Positions 9,262 through 36,400 of a stretch of 64,000 bases of DNA are shown here, piece by piece. The DNA is taken from assembly GCA_965235115.1 (NCBI GenBank), contig OZ249447.1:7564001-7628000 (forward strand). Reading direction: 5' to 3'. Below the pieces are notes generated by a model. The model saw only the letters and a program-made list of their open reading frames with translations. It ran no database searches and was not told the origin of the DNA. The stretch's first letter is position 1. Every line of letters begins with the position of its first letter. This DNA comes from Laetmonice hystrix (Eukaryota). The position numbers and the translations under genes were made by a program.

Positions 9262-9308
9262 ATGGTCAGAGTGTTGGCTTGGGTGGTCATCCTCACGGCG
9301 TCTACATG
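9262..9308 (+). CDS. Candidate signal-peptide first exon of the lectin/EGF membrane protein gene
   Basis: ATG-initiated hydrophobic peptide MVRVLAWVVILTAST(W) followed by a weak donor (gttaga). Linkage to the downstream exons is not demonstrated. Confidence 0.3.
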
Positions 9309-10430: not shown

Positions 10431-12145
10431 CAATAGTGTTTATAATAATGGCTGAGTTTGTACACACATTGAATAGTGTTTATAGTAACGGCTGAGTTTG
10501 TACACACATTGTGTTTATAAAAACGGCTGAGTTTGTACACACATTGTGTTTATAGTAACGGCTGAGTTTGTACACACATTGTGTTTATAATAACGGTTGA
10601 GTTTGTACACACATTCTGTTTATAATAACGGCTGAGTTTGTACACACATTGAATAGTGTTTATAATAACGGTTGAGTTTGTACACACATTGAATAGTGTT
10701 TATAATAACGGCTGAGTTTGTACACACATTGAATAGTGTTTATAATAACGGCTGAGTTTGTACACACATTGAATAGTGTTTATAACGGCTGAGTTTGTAC
10801 ACACATTGAATAGTGTTTATAGTAACGGCTGAGTTTGTACACACATTGAATAGTGTTTATAAAAACGGCTGAGTTTGTACACACGTTAAATAGTGTTTAT
10901 AATAACGGCTGAGTTTGTACACACATTGAATAGTGTTTATAATAATGGTTGAGTTTGTACACACATCGAATAGTGTTTATAATAACGGTTGAGTTTGTAC
11001 ACACATTGACTAGTGTTTATAACGGCTGAGTTTGTACACACATTGTGTTTATAATAACGGCTGAGTTTGTACACACATTGACTAGTGTTTATAACGGCTG
11101 AGTTTGTACACACATTGTGTTTATAATAACGGCTGAGTTTGTACACACATTGCCTAGTGTTTATAACGGCTGAGTTTGTACACACATTGTGTTTATAATA
11201 ACGACTCAGTTTGTACACACATTGAATAGTGTTTATAATAACGGCTGAGTTTGTACACACATTGTGTTTATAATAACGGCTGAGTTTGTACACACATTGG
11301 AAAGTGTTTATAATAACGGCTGAGTTTGTACACACATTGTGTTTATAATAACGGCTGAGTTTGTACACACATTGTGTTTATAATAACGGCTGAGTTTGTA
11401 CACACATTGTGTTTATAATAACGGCTGAGTTTGTACAAACATTGAATAGTGTTTACAATAACGGCTGAGTTTGTACACACATTGTGTTTATAATAACGGC
11501 TGAGTTTGTACAAACATTGAATAGTGTTTACAATAACGGCTGAGTTTGTACACACATTGTGTTTATAATAACGGCTGAGTTTGTACACACATTGGAAAGT
11601 GTTTATAATAACGGCTGAGTTTGTATACACATTGGATAGTGTTTACAATAACGGCTGAGTTTGTACACACATTGTGTTTATAATAACGGCTGAGTTTGTA
11701 CACACATTGAATAGTGTTTATAATAACGGCTGAGTTTGTACACACATTGAATAGTGTTTATAATAACGGCTGAGTTTGTACACACATTGGAAAGTGTTTA
11801 TAATAACGGCTGAGTTTGTACACACATTGGAAAGTGTTTATAATAACGGCTGAGTTTGTACACACATTAAATAGTGTTTATAATAATGGCTGAGTTTGTA
11901 TACACATTGAATAGTGTTTATAACGGCTGAGTTTGTACACACATTGAATAGTGTTTATAATAACGGCTGAGTTTGTACACACATTGGAAAGTGTTTATAA
12001 TAACGGCTGAGTTTGTACACACATTGGAAAGTGTTTATAACAACGGCTGAGTTTGTACACACATTAAATAGTGTTTATAATAATGGCTGAGTTTGTATAC
12101 ACATTGAATAGTGTTTATAATAACGGCTGAGTTTGTACACACATT
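10431..12145. repeat. AT-rich minisatellite with interleaved ~33-bp and ~40-bp unit variants, ~45 copies
   Basis: Core ataataacggctgagtttgtacacacattg, with or without aatagt, then tgttt. Confidence 0.95.
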
Positions 12146-13393: not shown

Positions 13394-14328
13394 CATGTGG
13401 TGTTGTTTACTGACCATGCAGATCTATTCCATTTTACAGGGTATAGAATTCCTCTATCTTCTCATCAGTGTTTTAATTAATGTGTTCTGTAGAACTGTCG
13501 GGCTCACTTCATCGTCGTACTGATTAGTATTACGTCACAGTATTCTCACTTGACGGTTGGAATGATCATCCTAGGTAAGTAGACCTAATCAGCTAACAAG
13601 CCTGGGTACAGGCTTGTTATCACGATGCTCCGTTAATACCTAATGTTTCCCAACACTCCAAAAATCCTCTCCCTGCCCTGATCAGCACTTAGGAATGTTT
13701 TTTGCCTCCATGTAGTCGGGGGGAGGGATAACGAAACGCGCCACTGTGAGGCAATCCCATAACCTTTCGGGAAATGGCAATGGTTTCTTTAAAGGGGCAT
13801 GCTATGGAACACGTTTTGGAGGATTTCCGGCAATTATCCAACTTGACTGTGTACTAGGGATCCAAGTAAATAATCCTACCACAGCATTTTGTCCTCCGAT
13901 GTGTTTTCGCTGCGTATGCAGCACAAGTAGGTTCTATACGACCAAACGCATAGATTTCTCCCGATAGCACATCTCCCGCCATAATTTGGTAGACAACCCC
14001 CCCACCAACCCGTGTAATCGCGTACTGCGTCACATCCTGCGTGTGCACTCTCTGCATGTGTTTAGTTAGTGCTTCGCTTAGTTGTAAACAATTCAGCAGT
14101 TGCACTCGATCGTTCGGCATCAGAATGCCACCCAAAAAATATTTTACGAAATCGGCAGAGAAGCGGGCAAGGGAGCCTCATAAACTTCGATTTCTCACGC
14201 AAAATGAAACTGATAAGTTTGCCTTTGTTTACCAAGCAATTTTAATGAAGGATCTCTTTATGAAAACAGCAAAAGTTCTTTGAAATACCGATTTTTCACG
14301 TTTCCTCATAATATGCCCCTTTAAATAT

Positions 14329-14444
14329 GTTGTGGAGCACTGGGACTGGTCAGTTGTGGAGCACTGGGGAGGGTCAGTTGTGGAGCACTGGGGAGGGTCA
14401 GTTGTGGAGCACTGGGGAGGGTCAGTTGTGGAGCACTGGGTCAG
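14329..14444. repeat. 24-bp tandem repeat, ~4.7 copies
   Basis: Unit gttgtggagcactggggagggtca. Confidence 0.9.
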
Positions 14445-14616
14445 TGCATAAGAGAAATGTATAGAGTGGTAGGATCCAAATCCATCTTTCAGTTTGCCAC
14501 GCAGATGATACAATCTGATACTCGACCACTTCCCCACACCAGCCCTCGCCCATTCGTCGCCTCTCACGAAGAGCCTGTGGCAGAGTTGAGGATTATTTTA
14601 ACTGTTATTTCCTCAG

Positions 14617-17600
14617 ATGACGAAGCGCCATCGGTGTGGGTTGATGGGAGGGTGAAGAACAAAGTGACTGACGAGATTGACAGTCTGACTGTGTCGTGTG
14701 GAGTGTTGTCTAGGTTTACCGCTAACCTCGATACAAACGTCAACTGTGACGACAGACGCACGTATCTCTGTGAGGACGATACCTGTGAGTAAGAATAGGA
14801 TTTCTCCGCCAGGTGACATTGCCATCACCCTATAGGTAGCGTTACTATCGCAACATAAGCACCTTCTTAAATAGAATAAATCCCATTATTGCATAATGTC
14901 TCATATATCTATGTAACTGGTATCTATGTCTACTATAGAGAGATAGTTGCTTTCATTTCGTTTTTAGATCTGATTATGTAATATTATTGATTATGTAATA
15001 TTATATATTACATAATCATGTCTTGAAGCGAAGAGGTGACTGACACTTAAATTTAATAGGCCCAAACAGTAGGCTGTCACGAGCTCTGATAGGCCTGTTT
15101 TTGGTTTTGTCTTTACATATTTGCAGGTCACGAGCTCCGATAGGCCTGTTATAGGTTTTGTCTTCACACATTTGCAGGTCACGAGCTCTGATAGGCCTGT
15201 TACAGGTGTTGTCTTTACATATTTGCAGGTCACAAGCTCTGATAGGCCTGTTACAGGTTTTGTCTTTACATATTTGCAGGTCACGAGCTCTGATAGGCCT
15301 GTTTTTGGTTTTGTCTTTACATATTTGCGGGTCACGAGCTCTGATAGGCCTGTTTTTGGTTTTGTCTTTACATATTTGCAGGTCACGAGCTCCGATAGGC
15401 CTGTTACAGGTGTTGTCTTTACATATTTGCAGGTCACGAGCTCTGATAGGCCTGTTATAGGTTTTGTCTTTACATATTTGCAGGTCACGAGCTCCGATAG
15501 GCCTGTTACAGGTTTTGTCTTTACATATTTGCAGGTCACGAGCTCTGATAGGCCTGTTTTTGGTTTTGTCTTTACATATTTGCAGGTCACGAGCTCCGAT
15601 AGGCCTGTTACAGGTTTTGTCTTTACATATTTGCAGGTCACGAGCTCTGATAGGCCTGTTACAGGTGTTGTCTTTACATATTTGCAGGTCACGAGCTCCG
15701 ATAGGCCTGTTACAGGTTTTGTCTTTACATATTTGCAGGTCACGAGCTCTGATAGGCCTGTTACAGGTTTTGTCTTTACATATTTGCAGGTCACGAGCTC
15801 CGATAGGCCTGTTACAGGTTTTGTCTTTACATATTTGCAGACGATAATTGTATTCGCGAACTTCCTGACTGGACATGGGTAGGCGGACATTGTATCATTC
15901 AGGACGGAGTTCCTCTTCCTGATCGCTTGAATTGGACTCAAGCTTGTTCGGAATGCGAAAAGAACGGATATCATTTGGTGTCCTTAGAAGACAATTACAA
16001 CAAATTAGCCTTCCGAACAGCACTACCAAATGACATAGCGAACCCTTGGATCGGACTCGTCAAAGCCAGAAATAGTAGGTTGGATTAGCTACCCACATTC
16101 AGGGACCGCAGAACAGTTTCGACAGTCGGGGGGGGGGTGCAGTTTGGGATGAGCCTGGAAACTACTGGAGATTGTTTTTACTTGTATTGAAAAAAGGCTT
16201 TCAGAAAAAAAGGGGGGGGGGGGGGCTGAGCTGCTGAGGCAGTTGAGGGTGGGTATTTCTTTATGTATTTTTTCATGTATGGCGCTATCCATGCCCCCCC
16301 CTATATAATATATAGCTATAGGTCGATTAGGCCTATATACACGTTCTAAACTAAACATGTGTTTTGTGTAGACATGTGCTTTAAAAAAGCTTTTATTATA
16401 TAACTGTGTGTTACGTCAAGGCAATGTTTAAGCCTACTGGCGGGATTAATATATTTCATTACAGAATGTGATAAGGGTTATATCGGTTGTAGTGGCTGTT
16501 TCGGTAAGTTTTTCTTGAGTCGCTCTTTCAAGGTTGAGGAACTCTCATATATCCAATGTAAAGTATTTGATCAATTATTTGTATAAACACACTGCTATCA
16601 GATCCCATACACTCGTTTACTTGACGTATTTCTCGCCATTATTCTGTTGCATTACTGATCATTCCTGTCTTTCCTATAGATATTGATGAATGTAAATACT
16701 GATCATTCCTGTCTTTCCTATAGATATTGATGAATGTAAATACTGATCATTCCTGTCTTTCCTATAGATATTGATGAATGTAAATACTGATCATTCCTGT
16801 CTTTCCTATAGATATTGATGAATGTAAACTAAAGCAAGCAAAATGTGCCTATGAAGCCAAATGTGTCAATATCAAAGGGAGTTACGTTTGTGATAGTAAG
16901 TTTATCAAATTATTTCAAAACTTTATAGATTGACCATACTATTGAAATATATTCAAACGGGGGGTGGGGGGGATTTAATTGTTATATAAGGTGCTCACTA
17001 GACGCTGACAGTACGCAAGATGGGCTGCAGGCAGTTATGACGTAACAATGGATTATTACGATCACAGTATCTATAATGATTACAATCGATAGGCGTAGTT
17101 GGCTATACTCATCATGATACAACAATGATTAAAACATCATTTTGATACCAGTTATGACGTAACAATGGATTATTACAATCACAGTATCTATAATGATTAC
17201 AATCGATAGGCGTAGTTGGCTATACTCATCATGATACAACAATGATTAAAACATGATTTTGATACCAGTTATGACGTAACAATGGATTATTACGATCACA
17301 GTATCTATAATGATTACAATCGATAGGCGTAGTTGGCTATACTCATCATGATACAACAATGATTAAAACATGATTTTGATACCAGTTATGACGTAACAAT
17401 GGATTATTACGATCACAGTATCTATAATGATTACAATCGATAGGCGTAGTTGGCTATACTCATCATGATACAACAATGATTAAAACATCATTTTGATACC
17501 AGTTATGACGTAACAATGGATTATTACGATCACAGTATCTATAATGATTACAATCGATAGGCGTAGTTGGCTCTACTCATCATGATACAACAATGATTAA

Positions 17601-20600
17601 AACATCATTTTGATACCAGTTATTTGTTCATTTTGACAGTAAACGAGTGTTACTCACAGCCTTGTCCGAATGATACAACATGTATCGATACAGTGGAATC
17701 GTTCGAGTGTGTTTGTGACGGCATTGTCGACAAGGATGTTTGTGATGGTTTGCTTTCATGTACTCATATATCATCTCACAAAATCCTGCGATTCACAAGA
17801 AATTGAACCCGAACAATTACGATCTCTTTGCAAGCTTAAATTGAAATAGATTCTTGCGCATACATCTCAAACTTTTGTTCATCAAAATTTGATAGTAGGC
17901 CTACGATTTATAAAGTGAGAATGCAGCCGTAAGAAATACAAGACTTCGCCCTCTTGGTTTTAAATGAGATAATATTCCTTATGGTTGATGATTTACTTTA
18001 ATTTCAGCTCCAATCTCATGCAACAAAGAAAATGGAGGTTGCCAACAGAAATGTGACGATTTAGCAGGAAAGGTTATCTGTTCGTGTAAGAAAGGGTACA
18101 AACTAAATGCCGACAGTCGCACCTGTTCAGGTAAAGCAGTATACCAAACGTATAGGTCGTTCTATATATAAACCTAATGTTTTCAATATGTGCCACCAAA
18201 ATAAGTGAAACATGAAACAATAAGTGGACGGAGGCGGGTATAGGAAGGAGTACAGTGTAGTAAGACCTAATTATTTGTATGTGTTTTATATGTAGATGTG
18301 CCGCCGACATGCGCAGTTGATAACGGCGGTTGCGGGCATTTCGCTCTCTGTAAGCCTGCTGACGTCACCAAGGGGGCAGTGACATGTCAATGTCCAGACG
18401 GATTCCTTCTCCAGGACGACAGATGTGTCGGTGAGTAAAACGATCCACTGGAAATACGTGGTGGTGTTGTGGTGGTGGTGATGGTGGGGGGGGGGGGGGG
18501 GCGCATATCGTGTACCATGACCAGACGCAGCTAAACATTATCAGAATGCGGAACGAGATCCCAAGAAGAACTTATAGCATTACAGCATGATCTATTTCTT
18601 TCATATTAAAAAGGGCACACTATAAGCGTAGCTACATCCCGACATGACCATTATTGAGACTTACTGGAATAGGTCACAACCTTGACTGAGAAATCGTAAC
18701 GTCAAGTTTGCCAAGTATAAATGTCTGAATCTTACAGATGACAATGAATGCGAGGATGACGTTTGCGACAAACTGCCATGTCTCAATACGTTCTGAGAAA
18801 TCGTAATGTTAAGTTTACCAAGTTACGTTTATGTCTGAATCTTACAGATGACAATGAATGCGAGGATGACGTTTGCGACAAACTGCCATGTCTCAATACG
18901 TTCGGCTCTTTCCAATGTGTTTGTCCGATTGGGCAAACATGGGACGGAGAGTCGTGCAATGGTGAATCATTGAATCTTTTTACAATACACATAATAATAT
19001 TATGTTCATATACATGTACAGGTGAAATTGCTTACATACAATATGGATTACATTTAGACAAGGCATCCCTATATGAATATCATTAATCCATGATACATTC
19101 GTTAAAAGATCAAGGATTTATTTGATTTGATGCTGATGACATACTATCCTATAATCGAGTTTATGTTTTATTCCTGACGACTCAGCTCGCTCGTTGTGTG
19201 CCGTTGTTTCAGGTACTACTCCACAGGACTGCTTGGTTTCAAACGGTGGCTGTGAGGACGAGTGTCTAGGATCATACGGACCATGCTCCTGTAGCTCGAA
19301 TGGGCTTACCCTATCAGACAATGGTCTTTCATGTGTCGGTATGTACAGAACCTATACCTCTTCATATATCAATACATAAGATCATGTATGCACCATGTGT
19401 CGGTATGTACAGAACCTATACCTAATATCATGTATGCAATCATATGTGGAGCCCAATTAATGCGGTGTTTCATGTATCAACCAGATATCGATGAGTGTGC
19501 CACACAACCTTGTCCAGACGGCGTGTATTGTTTGAATACTTACGGGTCGCATAAATGTGTTTGTCCTATTGGTAGCGTATGGACTGGTTCAAACTGCAGT
19601 GGTGAGTATGGCACAAAAACACACACACACAAAAAAAACAACAACAAAAAACACCAGCACATGTATTAATAGATGTATTAATAATAAACAAGGGACTACA
19701 TTTTTAGGGCAGACCACTCTCACAAATTTGGTAGAAGCTGTGCATAAAGTTCTCTCGATATTTCCTGTATAGCCGACATATTGAGGTGCAGCATCGCTAA
19801 CGGTGGATGCTCCCAGATCTGTGAGGAGTCCCATACCTCTGGAAGACCAGTGGTCAGCTGCAGGTGTTACCCTGGGTTCAGTCTGAGAGACGGCGTGTGC
19901 CGCGGTAGGTCGCTATCATCGTTTTTAGCTCTCCTCAACAAACTAATTCATGCATTCAAAGACCAATTTGGTGTATTTAATTCTCTGAGGTGTGTGTGTA
20001 TACTTGCATGCAGACATAGACGAATGTCTTCCTGACACGTGTTTCCCGTACGGATGTATCAACACCTGGGGGTCGTTCAAGTGTGTCTGTCCTGCTACCC
20101 GTGTATGGAACGGACAGGCTTGTGTCGGTGGGTTCAGTATACAGAAATATTCATTCTACCAATGTCAAGTACAGAAAGCTCTTTGTATATATAAATCTAG
20201 AGGTAACTACTGTAAAGTAGCTAGTTTATTCACCACGTGGCAGTTATACCAGCGAAATATGAGTGCGATTATCAAGCGCCATGGTTGAGTGGACACGGGC
20301 GAGTCCCAACGACGACCACCACCACAGAAGTGGTGGCACCTCTATTGGGATCGCTCGTGACTTCCTACCAATACCGCCACTCTCTTGTGCACCTCATCAA
20401 CATCGGTGGACCTCAACACCTGGGTTGACACCCTCTGGTCTTGGCCCACCTCGCGTCACGAGGCGACATGTCGCTTTAATCTTAGGCGACTGAGAAGCGT
20501 GTACACATTGACCACCCCTTGTCACGACTCATAGCGTGAAGTAGACTACTTGTACAGCTTGATAGAACACCTTGGCCCTCGGCGTATAATCTGCATGGGA

Positions 20601-23600
20601 TCATTCGTGGGCCGTGGTCTATCCCTTACATAAACGACCTCTGCTTTTAATCATTATTCCAAGTGGCAAACCTTTTCTTACAAGTGCTGTGTCAAGAACA
20701 GTAGCTGTATATTTCATTTCAAATTTAATTTGAGCTACTAGTATATTACTGTTACTTTCTCAAACACGTGTCTAAAAGTCGATGTCTCATTTTATTGAAG
20801 AGAAGAAAAACTGAACAGATTATCTATAATGATTTTATCGATGTTAAAACTGGTATACGATAGATGCCAAACGAGTGTGTGCTGTGAACAATGGTGGATG
20901 TGCCCAGAGTTGTTCTAGTGGAGAGTGTAGTTGTGGACCGGGCCTGGAACTCTCAGCCGACTCAACCAGCTGTGTCGGTACGTAAATTGGTCAGTCACCC
21001 TTCTCACCCCCACCCCGACCCCCTGTTATAGCCAGACACCGGTACGTAAACTGGCCAGTCACCCTACTCACCCCCACCCCGACCCCCTGTTATAGCCAGA
21101 CACCGGTACGTAACCTGGCCAGTCACCCTACTCACCCCCACCCCGACCCCCTGTTATAGCCAGACACCGGTACGTAACCTGGCCAGTCACCCTACTCACC
21201 CCCACCCCGACCCCCTGTTATAGCCGGACACCGGTACGTAACCTGGCCAGTCACCCTACTCACCCCCACCCCGACCCCCTGTTATAGCCAGACACCGGTA
21301 CGTAACCTGGCCAGTCACCCTACTCACCCCCACCCCGACCCCCTGTTATAGCCAGACACCGGTACGTAAACCGGCCAGCCACCCTACTCACCCCCACCCC
21401 GACCCCCTGTTATAGCCAGACATCCCTCCTTCAACCCCCCCCCCCTCCAAAGTCCTGGATACTGAACTGCTCGTGCTGTCTCTTCATTGCGTGATGGAAT
21501 GTTTTGTGAAGCTATACCTCGTACCGTAGGCCTGTATACTATGTCAGTGAACCAAGTGTTTAACATACTCAGACTATTAAGTACCACTAATGGTAGGATA
21601 TCACATGCAGAGATTTGTTGTAACCAAACGTGTCATTTTTGACTTACTGGTATAGACACGGACGAATGTAGTACCAGTGACCCATGCGGTAGCCTCAACT
21701 GTATCAACACGCTTGGGTCCTTCATCTGCCAATGTCCTGTGGGAACGGTCTGGGATGGAAAATCCTGCGTGCGTGAGTGTTATATATTTATAAATGTATT
21801 GACATTTTATTATCCCGTTTCCCTCCGTATTGGCTACCACACAACAAGTGTCAGGAACAAACAATGATCTCTTGTTTTCGGGAAGTTTGATGAAGCAGTG
21901 GATTGAAATTTTAGCTTTTGTTGTGGGATGGAAAATCTTCGACCGTTTCCCACAGAGCGGTCTGTAGGTATGGTAGGGAGGTTTCAGAAAGGAAATACTT
22001 CCCATAATCCGTTCTTGTGGTTTCCCTATTGTTCAAAGCACATGAATTATCATTTTAGTGACGAACATCTTTCGGTTTATATTATCATTCAGATGTAATT
22101 CGGGATTGCGACAAAAAGAACGGAGGTTGTGATTACAACTGTGATAATGGCCAATGTTCGTGCCCGGTTGGACTTCTACTGTCTGACAATGAGCAAAGCT
22201 GCATTGGTAGGTGTCATCTTATACAAATAAGGGGCAGAGTATTTGATATAAGGGAGGGGGCATATTTTTCCTTCTATGCAATCTATTTTGTTTACTTCCA
22301 AACCAATAAAGAACTTTATTTCCCTTCTACATATTTTATTTTTACATGCATGTGTGGTGAGATAAACCATCTGCTGTTTTCGTTTAAAACGTTTAAATGA
22401 GATATTAGCTGTGCCTTCCGTTGTCCCGAGAAGATGTTACTGTGAGGTTGACCTTCCAGATAAAGATGAATGTGCTGATGCCGGGGGGCAGGCCTCCTGT
22501 GGTTTTCCGTTTATCTGTGTCAATACGTTTGGCAGCTTCAACTGTATCTGCCCGCGTGGATTCGGTTTTGACGCTCAAACCTGCACCCGCAAGTATCTCT
22601 ACAACCATTTAGATAATCATGATTCGTGTAATTTGGCATTCTTGTAGGGCTCACAGCTATATTTAACAGTGAATATTCAGGATATTTTTATTCTTGCAAT
22701 GTACTTAGGTATATTATTTGTGTTCCTCTAAATTTATACTTGAAAGAATTAAATCTAATGAGGATATTGCTTGTACATTGTACTAGAACATATCTATGTG
22801 CTATCAGAGGAACATAATGATAGAATTCTCATATTATTTCATTGACACCTACACAATTATGTAACAGTTATATATTTCTTAATTGTTGACACCTCAGGTA
22901 ACTGTAGCATAGCCAATGGGAACTGCCAGTATACGTGTGAAGATGGGGAGTGCAGCTGTCCTGATGGTCTGGCTTTATCCGCCGACGGACAGACTTGTGT
23001 GGGTATGTATATAAAACCCTATAAGATCTACAGTATTGGACATAAGATATAGGTTTATCATATTCGTCATAAACTCTTCCTATAAGTTTATCATATTCGT
23101 CATAAACTCTTCCTATAGGTTTATCATATTCGTCATAAACTCTTCCTAAAGGTTTATCATATTCATCATAAACTCTTCCTAACTATGATATAAAGAGTTG
23201 ATGAATCAGTCCAGGTCGGCCTAGCATATAGTGGCCAGACTGCTTGATTCAGAAATAGGGGCATAACTTCTGTTCTCTTTTCAGATATCGATGAATGTGT
23301 TTTGAACACAGATGACTGCCCTTTCAACCGACCGTGTGAAAACACATTGGGATCGTTTGAGTGTAGAACCAAATGTCCAGGGAAGGCAATTGGATGCAGA
23401 ACGGACTTTGGTAAGATCTTTTCACATCGTTTGAGTGTAGAACCAAATGTCCAGGGAAGGCCATTGGATGCAGAACGGACTTTGGTAAGATCTTTTCACA
23501 TCGTTTGAGTGTAGAACCAAATGTCCAGGGAAGGTCATTGAATGTAGAACGGACTTTGGTAAGATCTTTTCACATCGTTTGAGTGTAGAACTAAATGTCC

Positions 23601-26118
23601 AGGGAAGGCCATTGGATGCAGAACGGACTTTGATAAGATCTTTTCACATCGTTTGAGTGTAGAACCAAATGTCCAGGGAAGGCCATTGGATGCAGAACGG
23701 ACTTTGGTAAGATCTTTTCACATCGTTTGAGTGTATAACTAAATGTCCAGGGAAGGCCATTGGATGCAGAACGGACTTTGGTAAGATCTTTTCACATCGT
23801 TTCAGTGTATAACTAAATGTCCAGGGAAGGCCATTGGATGCAGAACGGACTTTGGTAAGATCTTTTCACATCGTTTTAGTAAAGAACTAAATGTCCAGGG
23901 AAGGCCATTGAATGCAGAATGGACTTTGGTAAGATCTTTTCACATCGTTTGGGTGTAAAACTAAATGTCCAGGGAATACTTTGGTAAGATCTTTTCACAT
24001 CGTTTCACATAATATTACATTCGTGATTATTGATCACACATTCCTTCAGACCTGACTTTTTGATGATTTCAGTTCTCGGTCATTGCGAGTTCGCCTTCAC
24101 CGTCCCGGGTTGTGCATACACAGAGGACATGAACATCAAGCAGAGTGCTGAATATTTGAAAAATTACAAATTCATCAAAGCCTCGGTAAACTTATATCTT
24201 ATACAAGTTATATACCCCCCGGTACGTCAAACATAGATGGTTTACACATACTTACTTAATTCACAGATCTACATACATACATACACTCATGGTTATACTG
24301 AAGATATACTACCTCATGTGAGGGTCAGAGGGCGAGCTTTCTTGAGGTAAAGCCATGCCTGGGTCAGAGGGCGAGCTTTCTTTAGGTAAAGCCATGCCTG
24401 GGTTAGAGGGCGAGCTTTCTTTAGGTAAAGACATTCCTGATGCCTCTCCCGCGTAATGCTTTCAGTATATCAACCCAGTACAGGAGCTTCATGCGTTGGG
24501 TCTGCAAGAGGTTGATGTTACCTTTGCGTAAGTTGCTCCCTGTGACCTCAGGTGGTTATGGTATTTGAGATATTAGAATTATAATAGAATAATAGCAGCT
24601 TCAAACGTTCAAATAGCATACAGACAGGGGGAGTAGAGGGAGGCGGAAATAGAGCTCGAACAAGTCAAAGTGGCCCGTGTGAGGGTGTCAGTAATCGGGG
24701 GGGGGGGGGGGTGCGTATCTGACAAATTATGATGCTTTCAATATAGTTGTGTTAACCGGGATAGTGATTTTATACGTCAACAGGCCTGGTCTTGAGATTC
24801 GGGTGAATCTGGGGTTTTTCTCCACACTCACGTACGGGCGACAAAACCAGATTGGGAGGGCAATATGGAAGGCGATCCAAGCGCGCAAGTCCAGGTTCAT
24901 GTGTGGGGATGTCGCCCATATTATCGTGAACCCTATTGTGGTATTAAAACATTCTTCCCCAGTGCCAATCCGTAAGTAGGCCTATAGTAAAAGCTCTTTA
25001 ATATACATTGTAGTACATATGGATTTGTGCAATCGAATTTTCTTTCTTTATTTCGTTTTAGCATAGATCTTGCCATTCGGGCACCATTCAGGCACCATTC
25101 AGGCTGGTTATAATTTTAAAATATCATTATAATGTGTTATTTTATATGATATTTCTCAGCGGTAGATTCCGAGTGTTTCCTGTACAAGGTTTTAAAGTTA
25201 TGTCCAAGCTTACCATCTGGAGACAAAAACTGTCGGGAAATAGAAGATGAGATTGGGAAACATTATCCTGTATGTGTGTAAGTACCTCGCCAACATCCCA
25301 TGAGGTCTGCAATACCGTGAGAATTATTTTGAAGCTTTTATTGGTGCTAAACGTAACCAAAGTCTAACAGAATAAAGATATGAAAGAACGTTAATCATCA
25401 TGGTCCAACAGGACAAGTTACGGATGTTTCATGTGTAACCAAGCGTGTGACCAAGCGAGATACACATTTTGATACACATTTTTTCTTCTTCCCTTTGCCT
25501 TCCCGAAGGTGTCCTGTCGGGTTTTATGGTGAGCGATGCCAGTTCAAACTTCCCGATCTGCAGCCACCAGGAGATGGTCACAAAACCTCGCCACGTTTGT
25601 CTGAGGCGGAGCTTGGGTTAACCGTCGGGTTGGTTATTTGTGGACTTTTGTTTGTCGTGCTCGGATGTCTCCTCTGTTTGACGTGCAGGAGACAGAGTGT
25701 GACGCCTGCAGATAAAGTCACACGCTTGGTTACTTATCATGATACTTCAGAGTTCATACACAGGTTGGTAAAATACAATATCTGTAGGTCCTATAGCTGA
25801 ACAGTTGTGAATAAGGTTACGATGATACAGCAGAATTTGGCATATTGAGTCAATCTAAATGCTCTTGCCATGATTAATCAATCATCATTCAATCAATCAA
25901 GTTTATTTCTATGAAAAGAAAGCGTACAGATGCATTAACCTCGTTGAAATACATTAGGGATAGGAAGCATAATATTGCTTATGAAGTCCCTGATGATGAA
26001 ATTACATTTAATAATTTACATATTTTCAGAACGTTCACAATGATATTATCATGAACGTGCCATTACTTGTTTTCAGACAGATTCCCGCGGTGAAGTGTAT
26101 CCCATCGTACCGAACTAA
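14617..26118 (+). CDS. Type I membrane protein: C-type lectin half-domains, EGF/cbEGF array, SEA-like region, EGF, TM and short cytoplasmic tail (5' end unresolved)
   Basis: Phase-1 exons: 14617-14784, 15841-16074, 16465-16503, 16812-16895, 17640-17747, 18008-18130, 18296-18430, 18848-18961, 19213-19338, 19485-19601, 19773-19904, 20014-20127, 20864-20977, 21656-21772, 22093-22206, 22460-22588 (GC donor), 22898-23002, 23285-23410. SEA-like exons: 24073-24185, 24466-24527, 24784-24971. EGF: 25160-25277 joined to 25509 onward ([12 protein letters not shown]). TM: [23 protein letters not shown]; the donor after the TM exon is uncertain. The last exon ends ..[12 protein letters not shown] at 26118, with AATAAA near 26318. 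Motifs DIDEC/CxNxxGSF and C..NGGC recur. Confidence 0.85.
15076..15840 (+). repeat. 51-bp minisatellite, 15 copies, each ending in a 3' splice-site motif
   Basis: Unit gtcacgagctccgataggcctgttacaggttttgtctttacatatttgcag. The last copy is the real acceptor of exon 15841. Confidence 0.95.
16653..16828 (+). repeat. 44-bp tandem repeat, 4 copies, containing a branch-like motif, acceptor and exon start
   Basis: Unit tactgatcattcctgtctttcctatag|atattgatgaatgtaaa, with AG acceptors at 16679, 16723, 16767 and 16811. Confidence 0.95.
17032..17623. repeat. 117-bp tandem repeat, 5 copies, intronic
   Basis: cagttatgacgtaac... starts at 17032, 17149, 17266, 17383 and 17500, and ends 16 nt before the acceptor at 17639. 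Confidence 0.95.
18686..18903 (+). repeat. ~110-bp tandem duplication of an acceptor plus the first half of a cbEGF exon
   Basis: cttacag|atgacaatgaatgcgagg...aatacgttc occurs at 18738 and 18848. The upstream copy ends in TTC TGA. Confidence 0.9.
20225..20617 (+). mobile_element. Dispersed repeat, copy 1 (intronic); class unknown, possibly solo-LTR-like
   Basis: About 400 bp with clear reverse-complement similarity to 40138-40530, for example gagtcccaacgacgaccaccaccacagaagtggtggc and cacctgggttgacaccctct. Confidence 0.75.
20977..21422 (+). repeat. 64-bp minisatellite, 7 copies, each recreating a g|gtacgt donor
   Basis: Units start at 20977, 21041, 21105, 21169, 21233, 21297 and 21361. The plus strand is C-rich. 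Confidence 0.95.
23052..23183. repeat. 33-bp tandem repeat, ~4 copies
   Basis: Unit ggtttatcatattcgtcataaactcttcctata. Confidence 0.9.
23353..24008 (+). repeat. 74-bp minisatellite, ~9 copies, made of 58 nt of exon plus the donor
   Basis: Unit tcgtttgagtgtagaaccaaatgtccagggaaggccattggatgcagaacggactttg|gtaagatcttttcaca. The true exon end is at 23410. Confidence 0.95.
24322..24430. repeat. 39-bp tandem repeat, ~3 copies
   Basis: Unit gggtcagagggcgagctttctttaggtaaagccatgcct. Confidence 0.85.
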
Positions 26119-27409: not shown

Positions 27410-30400
27410 ATGATTGTGCATTTTGGAAATTGTGGTTTCCAATTAAAGATTTCAGTAGAGGGTGTATTACTCTTACTAGTAATATTAGTAGCCTCATCCG
27501 TTGAAGCGAGAGAAAGCAAAGCAAAATGTGCTGTTTGTCAAGAAATCTCAAGCAAGTTTTTAGAGGTAGGTTCTATTTTTGAAAATATGATACATTAATT
27601 ATTTCATATGAGTTTTACTATTAGGATCCCCGTTAGAATCTGTATTTTACTTTGACCTTCCAACAATTCACAACAGAAAAATATTTATTGAAATATGCAA
27701 CATGAATTTGAGTTTTAAATCTATCGGTATAACTGAAGTCCAAAGCTATTTCATAATGATTGAAGATCATTTGATAAGGTTTGTGCTTTTTGTACAGGGT
27801 TTAAAAAAGACAGCAAAATCAAATTTTGGAGGAGGTAATACACGATGGGAGGAGAAGAGTTTAGGAAGCTACCAATACAGGTAAAGTTGACTTTCACAGT
27901 ATTGAATTCTATTATTTCATGTTCAGTATGATTATGATATAATATCTTGTATTTTTTTAAAAGGTGGACAGTAGATAGAAAACTAAGAAAAACTTGACAG
28001 TTCTGCATATATATTCACTTAGGAAATATTAACAGTCCGTATATAAAATGTGATTTCTCGGTTGTATTTGCAGTGAGACACGCTTGATAGAGATAACAGA
28101 AATGCTTTGCCAAGACTCCAATTCAGATGTAAGTTATAAAGATATGAATCGCTTATTTCAGCTGGTTTACTTATTCACTGAATAACCTTCCTTTTTTCAA
28201 TTCTAGGAGTATCAGTATAAGGCTTGAATAGACATTGTATATATTCAAACATCTTTCAAGTTGTACCCTCACTCAGTGTCGGTCTTTATAATATTGTTAT
28301 AGACAGTGCAAGAATATTTTGTTTTCTTTCCCCAAAGTGTCATAATTTCATGGAGATATGGGAAGAGAAGATGGAAGAGTGGTGGTTTAAACATTTTGCA
28401 AAAGGAAAGGACAGAAATTTCTTTGAATACTTCTGTATTCAGCTTACTAAAGGTAAGGGTAGCAATAGCAGATTAGATTGACTTGATTGTAATCCTGTAT
28501 TGACATTTCTGCTAACTTTGTATAGGGTCATATTACCGGTAATGAAAGGAGGTTGAAAATTTAACATTAAAATGATCCGTTGAAGGAGAACATGAGATAA
28601 ATAATGACGTAAGATATTTGTGAGGAACCAGTATGATCTGAATGTCATGTACATTTTTCAATGAGGAAATGCCTTGTTTACAATAGTGTGCTGTCCAGAC
28701 AATACCTATGGTCCAGACTGTGAGCCATGTCCAGGCAGTGCAGGAAGACCATGCAATGACAATGGAAAATGTAATGTGAGTAGTTCCTCCATCTTTAAAC
28801 CCCTGAAATCTGAAGTATCCCATGAAAACAATATTTTGGTAGGATTTGCACAGAACATCCAAATTTACATAGAGAACTTACTTTGTCAAGTTGAAAGGTT
28901 CTTGCTGAATGTAGATTCCAGAACATGGAAAGTTCTAGAAAAGTCTGTATTTTACTGGCTTGAATTATTCTGACAGATCAGATAAAAATGTGACACCTTA
29001 TGTCGTTTTGTTTCAGGGTGCTGGCACCAGAGAAGGCACGGGAAAGTGTGAGTGTAACGAGGCCTACGATGGTGATCTATGTGATGATTGCAAAGAAGGC
29101 TTCTATGAAGAAATGCGAAATGAAACCCATGTGACCTGTGGAAGTATGATAAGCTTCTCATTATTCATTGTAAATAAAGGAATAACAGTAATGATTTAAA
29201 GGAACATAAAGGTACGGGGTATTTGCTAAAATTAACAACAATGGATTTATATATAGATTGAATAAGCATATTAAGGGCAGGTAGAATTGTGTAGATTTAG
29301 TAATTCCCACAAAGGTTATTTCAACTTTTTCATCTAAATTGTCATGTTCAGTTTTTTCTAAAGTTTTGCTTCGAACAGAAAGCTATAGTTTTATTTTCAC
29401 ACATTTTAAAATTCTGATCCATCAACCCTTTTTTTGCAGAGTGCCATGAAGCATGTGATGGAGGCTGCCATAAGGAAGGGGCGGCTGGTTGCCATGACTG
29501 CAAGAAAGGCTGGAAGCAAGAAACTGATGATAGTTGTCAAGGTACATCTTGAATACTTTATATCAGATAGCCAGGATATGAGAGAAAATTGTGAAATGAA
29601 TTTTGTTCTCTCTTCAGATGAATACAAATTATACATGTAAAGGCAAATCTGAACTCTTTGTAAGGCGTTGGTCATATTTGTTGTTATTTCTTATCGTTGA
29701 TGTCATAATGTAAAATTATCCCTGGTTTTGTTATTTTCAGATATGGATGAGTGTGCTGAAGATACAGAAAACACTTTGTGTCAAGAAGACCAATACTGCA
29801 GCAACACTCCAGGATCATATAGATGTGAAGGTGAGTGTGAAATAGAAGTTTAATTCTGCAATATTCTGTGACATACCTTGGTAATATCTAAAGATCGAAA
29901 ACAGACACAGATGCGCCAAGTCTATTGGGTAAAAGGAAAAAGAAATCTATAATTCTAAATTTTTCAGAATGCAAAGATGGCTGTTCCAAATGTAGTGGAC
30001 CAGGCCCTGACAAGTGCACCGAGTGTAAGAAGTCTCATTATCAAGAAGATGGGGCTTGTAAACGTGAGTGTTTTATGACAACACCAAGTGTTCAGGTGTT
30101 CATTTCAACTCTTCTATTGGGTACTGCTTCTCGTAATATTTTGAATGTGTTGATTTACCATTTACTTTTAAAAAGAGAACTAAATTTATCAGACAAAGAT
30201 GCAAGTATTTTAAAAGGTGCTTAATACATCATCACCTTCCTTACCAGAATCATGATTGAGTTGACTTAAATAGTTTGTGTTAAGGTCAGTGATAACGCCT
30301 ATGTTATTGCAGTTTGTGACCCATCGTGTGAAGAGTCATGTTCGGGACCAGGACCCAAGGTCTGTGAGAAGTGTAGGAGTGGTTATAACATGGTGGATGA

Positions 30401-33400
30401 AGAAGGATGTCAAGGTATGGTTACAAGATGCAAACATCTACTTGTATTCATCATCTAACAGTACATACAGAAGTTTACTAGTTGACACTGGAATATAATA
30501 TAACCCTAAGACATCCTTGTAGTTACACATTTCCATAAGGGAATAGAAGGCTTGGGATGATTTCCAAAAATAATTTCAAGCAAACACTGGTAGGTCTTGT
30601 ACTGTGTATTTGTTTTGAACAATATAGGTGAATTTTAGCGCAGATAAGTTTTTTAAAGTTGATGACACTAGAGTGGTGTTACTTTAACTGTACAATTTAA
30701 CTTTTAAATGTATTTTACATTTACAACAGATATTATTGAATGTGGACAGGAGGAGCCTGTTTGTGATGAGGGCCAGTACTGCATCAATACTCAGGGCTCA
30801 TATTATTGCCGTAGTAAGTAGGGTAATTCTCCCTCATACCTAATAAGATGTGATTTAATCTGGTTACCGACATATTATCTGAACTCAACATGTAGCTGTA
30901 GGCCTTATAATGGTAGGAACAGAAGATATTGGGTATAAATGGCAAAGGCATTATCCTGTTGAAAAGCATAATAATCTGCAGTGTACGTATTGGGGATAAA
31001 TAATCTATTTTCATGTAGATCAATCAGGTCTTGTCTTATAGAATATTGAAGCATGTAATAAAAAAAAATCGCTATGATTTATAAAAGGAATTGTAGCCCT
31101 GCCTTATCATGCCTGAGGTATGTGGCCATGCTAGGTTTGTGTAGTTCTGATATCTGTAGTTAGGAGTTCCGTTCATATTTTAATTTTGTGTGTTGGTATT
31201 AAAAATCTGTGTTTTGTTTTCAAATGTTTCAGCATGTGACAAGGCATGTAAGAGATGTAAGGGTGAAGGTACTATGTGTGACGAGTGTGCCAGTGGTTAT
31301 CAGATAAAGGAAGGGACCATAGAATGTACAGGTGAGAATTAACAGCCCTCAGTAACCTGAGAACAGCTTTGAACAAATATTATCTGTACCTTGATGTCAT
31401 CATAGGGTTGAGAATCGGTTAAGAAAAAGAAATGAATTTAACAATCACTTACCTGCAAGGTGTTTTTAATTGTAAAGGTGTTTGTGGTTCCAGATATAGA
31501 CGAATGTTTAGGAGAGACAAAGGCATGCACGGGTGATAACGAGAAGTGTGTGAATACCATTGGAGGATACAGCTGTGACTGCAAGAAAGGATACATTCGG
31601 AGGGGAAGTAAATGTGAACTTCGCAAGAAAGGTGCATAAAATTGTTTAAATCATCACATTCTCTAGGTGGGGGGGGGGGGTTAAAATATTTTTGGAAAAG
31701 TTATATTTTCTGGTTTATTTGATAGAATTTGTAGAATTGTCGTTATTGTAAAGATTTCATGGAGACTTGTATGACTTCCATAGGTATCCTAATGTTATTT
31801 ATTGATTTTTTTTGTGGGTTTGTTATAATGATTGCCTGGTTACTTCCACAGTATCTGCAACCTACTCCAAGCAAGCGTGTGAAATATGCACTGGGATTGT
31901 GAACAAGTTTAAAGAGGCAAGTTTTCTATAGATGTGCCAGTTCTTTTCTTTAAAGGATAAAAAAACACTTTCTGTATAACTCCATCACAATCAATATTGA
32001 CATATAAAAATCTGTTATTTGTATTCACATTCTGTCCTATTTGTCCTGATCGTTGAATATGTTCTCAGGGATTGAAGAAAACAGACAAGCTGAACTTTGG
32101 TGGCGGTAACACCCAATGGGAGGAGAAACGTCTTGGCAATTTCGCTTACAGGTTTGTGAGGTTCAACTCTCCGGCAATCATTTTAAACCTTTTGTAATTT
32201 GTCCTTTCATGGCTGACTGAAGTCAGTGTATCCTGGTATCCACAGTGATCCTATCTTTATGTCAACTATTGTCAATTATACTCATATTATCTGCTATTTT
32301 GACCATGTGATATTTCAGCGAGACACGACTGGTAGAAATATCTGAGGGAATCTGTGATGACTCAGACAAAGATGTAAGTGGGATGTTACACTTTACCAAT
32401 CTTATGTCTTTCAAATATATATCAAGCTTGCCTTTGTCTGGTTGGATGCAAGACTCCATTTTTGAGAATTCATCTTTATTTTACCTTTTCAATGTAACAG
32501 GTAGGGATGAATCGGGGACAGCTGTGGAATGCCTGCCGCAGGTACAACGTTCATGAGTTTATGAAAACCTACTTTGATTTGTTATTTCAGTGTTACAAGA
32601 TGATGGAGACGAATGAACAGTTTCTTGAACAGTGGTGGTTTAAACACTTTGCTGAGCAAAAAGATACAGACCTGCATAGCTACTTTTGTGTCAATCGTGT
32701 AGAAGGTAGGTTGAAGCGTCAACATTGCTGGATCCCATTCCACAGTATTTGATATAAACATCGGCCATTCTATGTGAATTGGACAGAATTATGGAGACGG
32801 TCAACAACTGCGAAGAGTGTTGTAAAAAGTTATTGTTGGTTTAATTCAAGATTCAAGACTCATGGAGCACTGGTTTTTTTGCCTGATTTAATATGTTCCA
32901 TAATTTGGTTACAGCCTGCTGCCCTAAAGGGACGTTTGGATCATCCTGTACTGAATGCCAAGGTGGGAAGGAAAACCCATGCAGTGGAAACGGAAAATGT
33001 GATGTGAGTTCTGTACTGAAAGCAGTTTTCATTATTGATTATGCATATTCACATGCAGGCTTGTTTCAGGATTTGTAGAATATTAGATTTATTTTATATT
33101 TGTGAACAAATATTTCAGGGTGAAGGTACTCGGGAAGGTGGAGGAGCTTGTTCCTGTAATGATGGCTACACTGGCGATACCTGTGACCAGTGTGGAAAGA
33201 AATTTTATGAAGAACGGAATGAAACACACCTCCTTTGTAAAGGTAGGTTAACTTGTTTGTTAATTTGGCATTTTCTGTCACAGAGTCCTTGCCAAAAGAA
33301 CAGAAATAATTTCTTAAAAGCAATATGAATCATTTATATCAGACTACCCGTATATTGTGAAACCCTAAGAACCAAATTTTGACTATGAATTGTACAAATG

Positions 33401-36400
33401 TCATGTTCTGACCAGGTTCATGGAATTGACTTCTGTTATTTTTACATACAGACTGTGACGATGCCTGTGAAAGTTGCTGGGCAGAGGGTCCCGCTGGATG
33501 TCATGAATGTAGGTCAGGATGGACTAAGGATGAAGAGAAAGGATGTTTAGGTGAGTGAAAGATGTCACTAGAACTGGAACAGAGGAAAAGTTACAGAAAG
33601 ATTTGTGCCGTCCCTTGTTATTTCTGAAAATGATGTTTGATGGTGCGAGGGATGGTCAATGATAACCAAACTACTCTGTTACAGACAAGGACGAGTGTGC
33701 TGCTGAAGTGTGGCCGTGTAGTGAGAACCAGCATTGTGTTAACACAGACGGCTCCTTTAACTGCCAGAGTGAGTTAATACAAAACGTTCATTAGAGTTTC
33801 TCTTCAATTTCTCTCCAGTAGTATGAAGATAAAACCAGATATAACTGTTGACAAGAGAATAAGAATAATTTTTGTTTCAAAATACAGACGCCCTTCTAGC
33901 TTGATTCAAGATATTCTACATTAGAACTTTTCCCCGTCCCGTTATGGTAAAATATTTACGGTCTGTGATATTGTTGATTCCAGATTGTCACCCAGCTTGT
34001 AAAGGCTGCACTGGGCCTGGAAATGACATGTGTTCAGAGTGCAATAAACACTACTTCCCAGACTCAGGAAAATGTTTTGGTATGTTAACTCAAGCTAGTA
34101 TCTGAAAGTGGTAATAAATCTTTAAAAAAAAATTTCTTAAATGTAAATCTGAAAAAAGTGTTTATTGGCAGATGTGGTGAGACTGCTGTCACTTAGTAGA
34201 GGTAAGATTACTGTCATGGGTAAATGTTTCAGAATGCCATGAAGCGTGTGAAAGCTGCACCACAGGGGGCCAACAGGAGTGCACGGAATGTCGCAGTGGA
34301 TGGATCTATAAGGAGGGCGAGGGCTGCGTTGGTGAGCAGATTAAGTTAAACTCATTTGTAACTAAACTAATGTTGTCGTTTAAAGAAAGTCGTTATTTCA
34401 CACCAAATGCTAAGTAGTTTAGTCTTCCTTTTTTCTATTTCAATTATTCCATATTACAGTTTTCAATGAAAATCAGAGCATTGATTTTCAACAAGATAGA
34501 TAGGTGAGGTAAGAAATGAGTGTTGTATTTACAGATGTCAATGAATGTAGTCGTGAGGAGCAGCCGTGTACATCAGATGAATATTGTGTCAACTCACTAG
34601 GCTCGTACAGATGTCATGGTAGGTTTGCTAACTCAGGTATAATCTCAGTCATGAGATGAATATTGTGTCAACTCACTAGGCTCATACAGATGTCATGGTA
34701 GGTTTGCTAACTCAGGTATAATCTCAGTCATGAGATGAATATTGTGTCAACTCACTAGGCTCATACAGATGTCATGGTAGGTTTGCTAACTCAGGTATAA
34801 TTACGGTCTAAAGAGAAAAAAGTCATAAAATCATGTTTTGAATTCTCCCCAGATTTTAAGGACAGATAGAGGTTACAGGGCTCAGGCTTTCTCACTTGAC
34901 TTATGACCATAACTTTGTGCAGGCTATAAGAAAATTTAGATTAAGATTGTTCCAAGTATATTCAAATAGCTCTGGAGGTTCTATTGGCCAGTCTTACTGT
35001 ATTACTGTATCGTTACAGGTTGCCACACGGCCTGTCAAGGATGTAGCGGAGCAGGCAATGATAACTGCCAGAGTTGCTCGGTTGGCTATCAACATGAAGA
35101 GGGGGTATGTGCAGGTATGTAGATTCCAGCCATGGTAAAACGTAAAACTGTCTATCTGTCTTGAGAAGTGTTGGAAGTTTGTAATTTGATCTGGATGATA
35201 TATTTATAGTCATTGTGTTATCATACAGACATAGACGAGTGTTCAGCAGATGAAGTGTGTAAAGGAAGTGGTGAGACATGTTCCAACACCGTGGGAAGTT
35301 TCAAGTGTGATTGTGTTAGTGGATACGTTAAAAAAGATGGTGTCTGTACAAAGAAAACAAAAGGTAAGACAAATTGATAGTTTCTTGTGGGACAGTAACT
35401 TCTTTTTGTGGGACAGTAGCTTTAGATGTGTTGTGATAGTTTGCTCAGTATGTTTGCTATAGTTTGCTCTGTATATGTTAAAGATTTTATTATTGTACGA
35501 ATGAAATGTTGCTTCATGGTGAATCAATAATTTCCAGTACCGGTAATTAAAATATTGTCCAATGTTGCTAATAGGTGTTGAAACTAGCTTGAGTGTGACT
35601 TTCTGTGCATATGCATTCATGTTGTACCATCCGTTGTACTGGTACTTGATGCACATCCTAGTAATGGGGGCACCTGTTGGGTGCTGTATACTGGCAGACA
35701 TAAAAAATGGATACTTGACATGTGTAAGCATGAAGAAGTTTCTGTATGATTGTTATAGGTTATCATGTCTGTGTAAAATGTGTGAACAATTGCAAATGAA
35801 CCCAAGTGAGCAGATAGGAATGACTGCACATTAAATACTGACAATAAATGATTGAACAACCAGGCGTGCTATTAACACTAAAAACGTGAACAAAATGTTA
35901 GGGGGGAATTTAGAATACTGGCTGTAACTTGAGTTACCTGACACCCAGCCAGGGAAACATTTCTCAATATTAAATATCAAAATAGACTTTACTGCTATTG
36001 TGTTTGATATTTAGGGATTTAGGAATATGGATTGGAAACTTGAAATCATTTAGTTATAATCAGGCATATGTTCCCCCAAGCAAATGGAGCATGTGATTGC
36101 TTTGTGTTGCGAGATACTGAGTGACTGTATGTAATGTCCAATGCCTTGCAGAATATTTGGGTTTTCATTTAACTAAAATTCCAAAAGAAAGTCCCAATTG
36201 GCAGATTGGTGTCTGTGTTTATGTTGTAATTTCTTACAAGTGCTAGTGCTCATTTCTTTCAACTTATAATTCATAGCAGATTTAGTGTCAGCAACTGAAT
36301 AAATGTGAATAGATGTTCGATAGCCAACCAAAGTGTTAGTGACAGTGGCCTGTCTCCCGTTTGTCTTGTAGATTCTACAAAGACAAAGGCTAAACAGAGC

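Follow-up and report, generated by a model that had tools for sequence, protein, structure and literature searches.

How a gene comes to carry the halves of its extracellular domains in the wrong order is the question raised by a plus-strand locus in the genome of Laetmonice hystrix. The locus lies in a stretch of 64,000 nucleotides (assembly GCA_965235115.1, contig OZ249447.1, positions 7,564,001 to 7,628,000 of the forward strand), which is called the window here and is numbered from its first letter. Four consecutive exons, A to D (Table 1), encode half-domains of the C-type lectin-like domain (CTLD) and of the EGF domain. The CTLD halves are not in N-then-C order, the C-half at 14617 preceding the N-half at 15841. 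The original prediction offered a circularly permuted lectin domain, non-linear splicing or a decaying 5' region as explanations. The observation is real and well described; the permuted-lectin reading lacks proof, and another explanation is more likely. The reading preferred here, with a probability of roughly 45%, is that A-D are a register-shifted remnant of a CTLD-CTLD-EGF-EGF region that lacks its outer and middle partner exons.

Four splice-competent half-domain exons

A plus-strand gene has A-D at its 5' end, and all four are genuine half-domain exons, single-copy and competent for splicing. Each has a length divisible by 3 and phase 1 at both ends, with two leading bases completing a codon and one base left over at the end. 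Each has an AG acceptor and a GT donor (GTGAGT, GTAGGT, GTAAGT and GTAAGT for A, B, C and D), and the coordinates, translations, frames and splice borders are all as originally given. None of the four contains an in-frame methionine. A and B have one copy each in the genome of 627 Mb and 35 contigs, and a genome search found no paralogue of either. The donor of exon C is strong and its polypyrimidine tract weak, and the second haplotype carries two synonymous changes and a Tyr-to-Phe change in this exon. Heterozygous differences amount to about 1% in exons and introns alike, which has no power on selection, either way.

The order of the exons in the assembly was compared with contigs of three runs from one sample. 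Contig depth over all four exons is single-copy, at about 40-50 (49 over A), and one contig spans B-C (15785-16682). An assembly error, in which blocks were mis-ordered across minisatellites, would account for the swap, and the short-read contigs do end at each of three arrays (51-bp, 44-bp and 117-bp), which leaves the A-B and C-D links and the link from D to the first EGF exon (E1) without independent confirmation. However, the window has no Ns, and the flanking arrays are four different, unrelated repeats that offer no shared repeat for a mis-join. Such an error is very unlikely. The run searches list only these three DNA-contig runs and no RNA run covering 14.5-24.4 kb, A-B included, which mildly points to low or restricted expression of the host gene.

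The lectin halves

Exon B is a clear CTLD N-terminal half by its translation, as had been proposed. It aligns with positions 2-48 of the 107 in Pfam Lectin_C (PF00059) at E 2.9e-4 and 22.0 bits, just missing the cut-off of 22.6. Against a CTLD profile built in this analysis from 174 domains, taken from B's best library relatives, it scores 38.6 bits with WIGL present. Those relatives came from a profile search of 1.84 billion representatives and are multi-CTLD proteins with 28-39% identity; none of the representatives exceeded 39%, and no orthologue was among them. A metagenome scan returned 20-residue chance segments only.

Exon A is far more divergent. It has no Pfam match by itself, reaches 5.8 bits alone against the same CTLD profile and ranks at E = 11 in a six-frame profile scan of the window. 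Joined in the order B-A, the two give a single CTLD alignment that covers profile positions 18-140 and scores 46.4-47.0 bits, up from 38.6 for B by itself. This gain of about 8 bits has an empirical p of about 0.002, an equal score being reached by 2 of 1542 natural 55-residue pieces of the window and by 3 of 2000 shuffles of A when these were appended to B. The nearest named Atlas clusters of A by language-model features are all Lectin_C families (0.88-0.89), a result rated as a lead only. Two-chain co-folding prediction of B with A gave 0.40, against 0.19 for the best control, with at least 77% of contacts in agreement between runs and a partner pLDDT of at least 48. This is graded as weak support: of 78 solved complexes, 51 reached the pass mark, as did 2 of 108 mismatched pairs, but passes at 0.60 or lower include only 5 of the 78 solved complexes and all 4 passing mismatches of 180. 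The proposal that A is a CTLD C-half has some support in the context of B and finds no Pfam match for A on its own. B followed by A does align as one continuous domain, with the reservation that A is divergent and weak alone. The translation of A has none of the EPN/QPD or WND sugar and calcium motifs; if it is a CTLD, its half would be of the non-sugar-binding type.

Together, A and B hold C0, C0', C1, C2, C3 and C4 and all CTLD core elements. A ends 4 residues past C4 and B starts 2 residues ahead of C0, giving 7 residues from C4 to C0 across the A-B junction. The N- and C-termini of a CTLD are adjacent in the fold, and a link of 7 residues would suffice between the end of A and the start of B. 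A circular permutation could therefore be read from these exons: a two-exon CTLD (B, A) would have been duplicated in tandem, the outer halves lost, and A then B spliced to fold at the N-terminus of a receptor. The alignment as one domain in B-A order, the weak co-folding result, and the intact splice sites and frames of A and B all fit this reading, as does a genome prone to tandem duplication at exon junctions. Permutation by duplication is also an accepted mechanism, with saposin/swaposin as an example (PMC3320104).

Several results point the other way, and permutation is a rather doubtful explanation. The RNA runs searched gave no transcript, no signal-peptide exon was found, and no orthologue, paralogue or duplicated intermediate was recovered, the closest library relative of B being below 40% identity. 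A is strongly diverged, and the C-D pair shows the same swap yet cannot fold as a permuted EGF (see below), so that a second, non-functional explanation is needed anyway. No description of a circularly permuted CTLD was found in the literature searched. The specific product, in which A and B would be spliced in genomic order into a permuted CTLD (beta2'-beta5 half, 7-residue link, beta0-beta2 half) at the receptor tip by exon-level duplication and loss, is unlikely. If it were true, it would be the first permuted CTLD, with the genomic route to the permutation still visible. Expression of A-D in order would also offer a rare natural intermediate of domain permutation and a test of the tolerance of the CTLD for new termini after the WIGL strand.

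The A-B junction can be read in another way. Its 7-residue link resembles the short inter-CTLD linkers of the multi-CTLD relatives of B, and the A-then-B order aligns across consecutive domains in 45 cases.

The EGF halves

Exon D is a clear calcium-binding EGF (cbEGF) head by profile match, aligning with positions 2-28 of the 43 in EGF_CA (PF07645) at 33.4 bits, over the cut-off of 27; the cbEGF N-half originally assigned to it is borne out. It has the D-x-D/N-E-C start and C1-C4 with N-x-x-G-S-Y/F, and it stops in phase 1, a single residue beyond C4. This is exactly where the cbEGF heads of the neighbouring CRELD-like genes, encoded at 30729-30813 and 33684-33768, stop as well.

Exon C, with 12 codons, is too short for a profile test. 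It resembles the C5-C6 tail of a cbEGF or else the beginning of a furin-like repeat, and it opens with x-C-D-K, as do the exons that follow nearby cbEGF heads. Outside real EGF and furin-like exons, only one other mini open reading frame (ORF) with at least 3 cysteines between an AG and a GTRAGT donor was found in 128 kb on both strands, and since such cysteine-rich mini-ORFs are rare, C is not a chance ORF. The spacing of D followed by C had been said to equal that of the intact EGF exon 23285-23410. This is so for C5-C6, but C4-C5 has two residues rather than three.

Joining C to D creates a GAT codon for the first Asp of D-I-D-E-C, and the same is seen at every EGF-to-cbEGF junction downstream. 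The termini of an EGF domain lie at opposite ends of the domain. A permuted EGF made from C-D is structurally implausible, since its ends would be far apart and no linker is present, and without a linker it cannot fold. At the least, then, the C-D pair must be two orphan halves.

The swapped order might also be a coincidence, with B and D as orphan half exons and A and C as unrelated open stretches that are not domain halves. The missing Pfam match and the window-scan rank of A are what would be expected in that case, as are the 12 codons and weak polypyrimidine tract of C. Yet A is right in length, phase, strand and cysteine spacing, its gain in the context of B has p of about 0.002, and its nearest Atlas families are all Lectin_C. 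C-like mini-ORFs are rare, with a single other example in 128 kb, and the x-C-D-K start of C recurs in the exons after neighbouring cbEGF heads. Coincidence is accordingly improbable.

Missing partners and signal peptide

The CTLD and EGF profiles of this analysis were run in six frames over the window and 40 kb upstream, and they found no other CTLD halves and no spare EGF tails. The EGF profiles were slightly weakened by two exon borders that were mis-set when they were built. Between D and the complete EGF exon that follows it there is no C5-C6 tail, and the sole tail-like piece, C, is upstream of D. The reported lack of a CTLD C-half after B and of an EGF C-half after D therefore holds at profile sensitivity in 104 kb. 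The stretch at 13493-13574, which had been put forward as a possible N-half for A, has no match to the CTLD profile (E 29) and is dropped. Apart from the tandem arrays and the similarity of EGF exons to one another, sensitive self-BLAST of 12-26 kb found nothing, and in particular no dispersed intron matches of the kind that a recent duplication would leave.

Heuristic scans found no signal-peptide exon in phase 1. A signal-peptide-like start is present at 9262-9308 on the plus strand (M-V-R-V-L-A-W-V-V-I-L-T-A-S-T), but its donors are all in phase 2 and do not fit A-D, which are in phase 1. Chance or a different transcript may explain it.

Non-linear splicing, by back-splicing or exon scrambling, would restore B before A and D before C in the RNA. 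With all exons in phase 1-1 any order stays in frame, and A and B together make 402 nt, a multiple of 3. The proposal is nevertheless rejected as barely credible. A-D lack an in-frame methionine and no signal-peptide exon was found, and the product of a circular RNA without a signal peptide would be cytosolic, where the disulphides of an extracellular domain could not form. The RNA runs searched lend it no support either.

The four exons may instead belong to two transcription units. A would then close the coding sequence of a lectin gene that lay upstream and has decayed, and B, C and D would fall within the 5' portion of the EGF-repeat gene. A CTLD is often the final domain of a protein, and reading past the donor of A gives C-E-stop, a stop after 2 codons, with an AATAAA 85 nt beyond, at 14875. 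But the stop falls within GTGAGTAA, the donor consensus, and with 58% A+T in the DNA an AATAAA is commonplace. In addition, the profile scans reveal no exon of such a lectin gene, N-half or otherwise, in the 54 kb upstream, and B would still be without a C-half and a signal peptide. Two units are thus quite improbable.

Half-domain exons and the ancestral region

A Lectin_C search of the genome gave many N-half matches (profile position 2 to about 50-65) that are followed by a C-half (about 50-107) within a few hundred bases, for example C19:7511551-7511709 and then 7511805-7511972. Split CTLDs are thus the norm in this genome, and some cbEGFs are likewise divided into a head exon that stops just past C4 and a tail exon. 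Half-domain exons, all of them symmetric phase-1, are the native coding unit here. Since native half-domain exons end at a matching position, D and C would have needed no new splice sites.

On the preferred reading, the ancestral N-terminal region would have been CTLD-CTLD-EGF-EGF, with its domains split into half exons. A-B would be a native exon pair across a domain boundary, the C-half of one CTLD and the N-half of the next, and C-D would likewise join the tail of one EGF to the head of the next. Three losses would have followed. Upstream of A, an N-half would have gone, and a high-copy repeat occupies that place today; B and C would have lost a CTLD C-half and an EGF head from between them; and an EGF tail would have disappeared from the stretch that separates D from the exon at 17640, the first complete EGF. 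As every exon is symmetric phase-1 and a multiple of 3, the frame would survive such losses, and at the level of the RNA they would be tolerated. There is no need to invoke a permutation, because A-B and C-D look like normal junctions between consecutive tandem domains. At present A-D may be skipped, they may be read as a leader that forms no domain, or the gene as a whole may be silent.

This register-shifted remnant is supported by the GAT codon at the C-D junction, the native split exons, the split juxtamembrane EGF of the same gene, the absence of partners in 104 kb and the lack of paralogues. The RNA runs without 14.5-24.4 kb are also counted in its favor. A decaying or rearranged 5' region is the best-fitting of the three readings in the original prediction, which missed the refinement that the swapped pairs are tandem-domain junctions.

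Some features weigh against a remnant. A-D are all open, with good splice signals and gene-typical spacing, which is unexpected for old relics. The 14 EGF exons and the transmembrane exon look intact, so the gene probably needs a 5' end, and no other was found. Three separate losses of exactly complementary halves are not parsimonious. Finally, A and B hold the full CTLD cysteine set, with the weak co-folding support given above (0.40 vs 0.19).

If A-D are a relic, they illustrate cleanly that a gene built with symmetric phase-1 half-domain exons can lose or reshuffle parts of itself with the frame unbroken. They would also be useful to annotators, since gene predictors would string such exons into a nonsense N-terminus.

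The host gene and its surroundings

From its ORFs, the host gene, at about 14.6-25.8 kb on the plus strand (Table 1), is predicted to encode a membrane protein of type I that carries 14-15 EGF domains. A-D occupy the place where the N-terminal part of such an EGF-repeat membrane protein should be encoded. All 14 single-exon EGF domains have usable splice sites. Among them, the cbEGF exon 22460-22582 is apparently followed by a GC-AG intron, with the donor GCAAGT in phase 1. The juxtamembrane EGF (25160-25797) is split between C4 and C5, with its tail in one exon with the transmembrane segment. An EGF tail and a transmembrane segment also share one exon in EGF-family ligand genes.

Downstream, 28665-35374 on the plus strand contains two tandem paralogous CRELD-like units with tenascin-type EGF, furin-like repeats, cbEGF heads and a terminal complete cbEGF. 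These may be two genes or one internally duplicated gene.

The repeat at 13594-14500 has a summed contig depth of about 5e5-7e5, as against about 40-50 in its single-copy flanks, and is present in on the order of ten thousand copies. Its ORFs have no Pfam match. Four of the minisatellites in the gene (15076-15840, 16653-16828, 18686-18903 and 23352-23976) are mirages, their repeat units lying across or against an exon-intron border and carrying a copy of its splice site. Several copies in the 23352-23976 array have an open frame and a GTAAG donor, so that alternative donors are on offer.

Other arrays lie outside the gene. A 40-bp x45 minisatellite at 10432-12145, upstream of the gene, has an open, Cys/Tyr-rich frame on the minus strand and is probably non-coding. 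Long arrays at 55374-56737 and 601-1275, both on the plus strand, have 31-bp and 36-bp units, respectively, and encode open peptide repeats. These are the Cys-rich ..V-C-V-T-D-D-D-W-V-C-C-V-C-Y-R and P-C-P-P-S-M-D-I-V-V-S-K. At 57509-61810 on the plus strand, the six-frame listing gives one open frame of about 1430 codons, possibly a transposable-element polyprotein.

Table 1. Exons, domains and repeats of the EGF-repeat gene (window positions; domain assignments are predictions from the translated exons)
Feature	Position	Strand	Description
Exon A	14617-14784	+	168 nt; putative divergent CTLD C-terminal half; W-x-D-G; three Cys at C2, C3 and C4 positions; ends Y-L-C-E
Exon B	15841-16074	+	234 nt; predicted CTLD N-terminal half; long-form C0-C0' hairpin, alpha1 with C1, alpha2, WIGL strand
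Exon C	16465-16503	+	39-nt mini-exon; C-x6-C-x2-C
Exon D	16812-16895	+	84 nt; predicted cbEGF head, D-I-D-E-C through C4
14 single-exon EGF domains	17640-23410	+	phase 1-1, 6 Cys each; cbEGF alternating with FXa_inhibition/cEGF types
EGF exon starts, first half	17640, 18008, 18296, 18848, 19213, 19485, 19773	+	
EGF exon starts, second half	20014, 20864, 21656, 22093, 22460, 22898, 23285	+	
Head of juxtamembrane EGF	about 25160-25273	+	separate ORF
EGF tail, transmembrane segment, short cytoplasmic tail, stop	25507-25797	+	EGF tail C-P-x-G-F-Y-G-x-R-C
Very high-copy dispersed repeat	13594-14500	.	24-bp x4.7 array at 14329-14440 (TRF); ends about 100-200 bp upstream of A
51-bp x15 minisatellite	15076-15840	+	unit is last 51 nt of intron including the acceptor of B; acceptor-side mirage
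44-bp x4 minisatellite	16653-16828	+	acceptor and first 17 nt of D; upstream copies reach a stop
117-bp x5 minisatellite	17032-17623	+	fills most of intron from D to first complete EGF exon; no contigs across
110-bp x2 array	18686-18903		over head of exon 18848; splice-junction copy
74-bp x8.4 minisatellite	23352-23976	+	last 55 nt of final EGF exon (23285) and donor; donor-side mirage

Comparison with known systems

Tandem multi-CTLD proteins of the macrophage mannose receptor-like type include the best relatives of B, and they share the long-form C0-C0' hairpin and the short inter-CTLD linkers. They differ from this locus in that only one N-half and one C-half are present here, with the C-half first. 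Ricin and fn2 domains are absent from the locus, the lectin halves are followed by EGF repeats and a transmembrane segment, and A is without the sugar and calcium motifs.

Group XIV CTLD receptors (thrombomodulin, CD93, CLEC14A and CD248) have an N-terminal CTLD, EGF repeats, a transmembrane segment and a short tail. The host gene resembles them in layout only, with lectin-like material upstream of many EGF and cbEGF domains, one transmembrane segment and a short tail. Unlike in this group, the CTLD halves are out of order here, no signal peptide was found by the scans, and the searches made, none of them aimed at this group, gave no sequence match to it.

The CRELD-type exon structure is similar at the level of single exons, as D ends like the CRELD-like cbEGF heads and C starts like the exon after such heads. 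In the CRELD-like units, however, the head is followed by its continuation, whereas here the C-like exon comes before D and none comes after it.

Saposin and swaposin resemble A-D in that two halves of one fold are swapped, and the locus here is prone to tandem duplication. For the present exons, in contrast, no duplicated intermediate, expressed product or conserved permuted homologue was found in the searches above.

Mirage minisatellites across exon-intron boundaries are described in the amphioxus Adh3 and globin genes (PMC3087553). The arrays here are alike in copying an acceptor or donor plus adjoining exon sequence. Mirages account for decoy splice sites and possibly for orphan pieces such as C, but not for exon reordering. 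As a relic, A-D would not represent a new principle, and their setting would be a genome in which splice-junction minisatellites are common.

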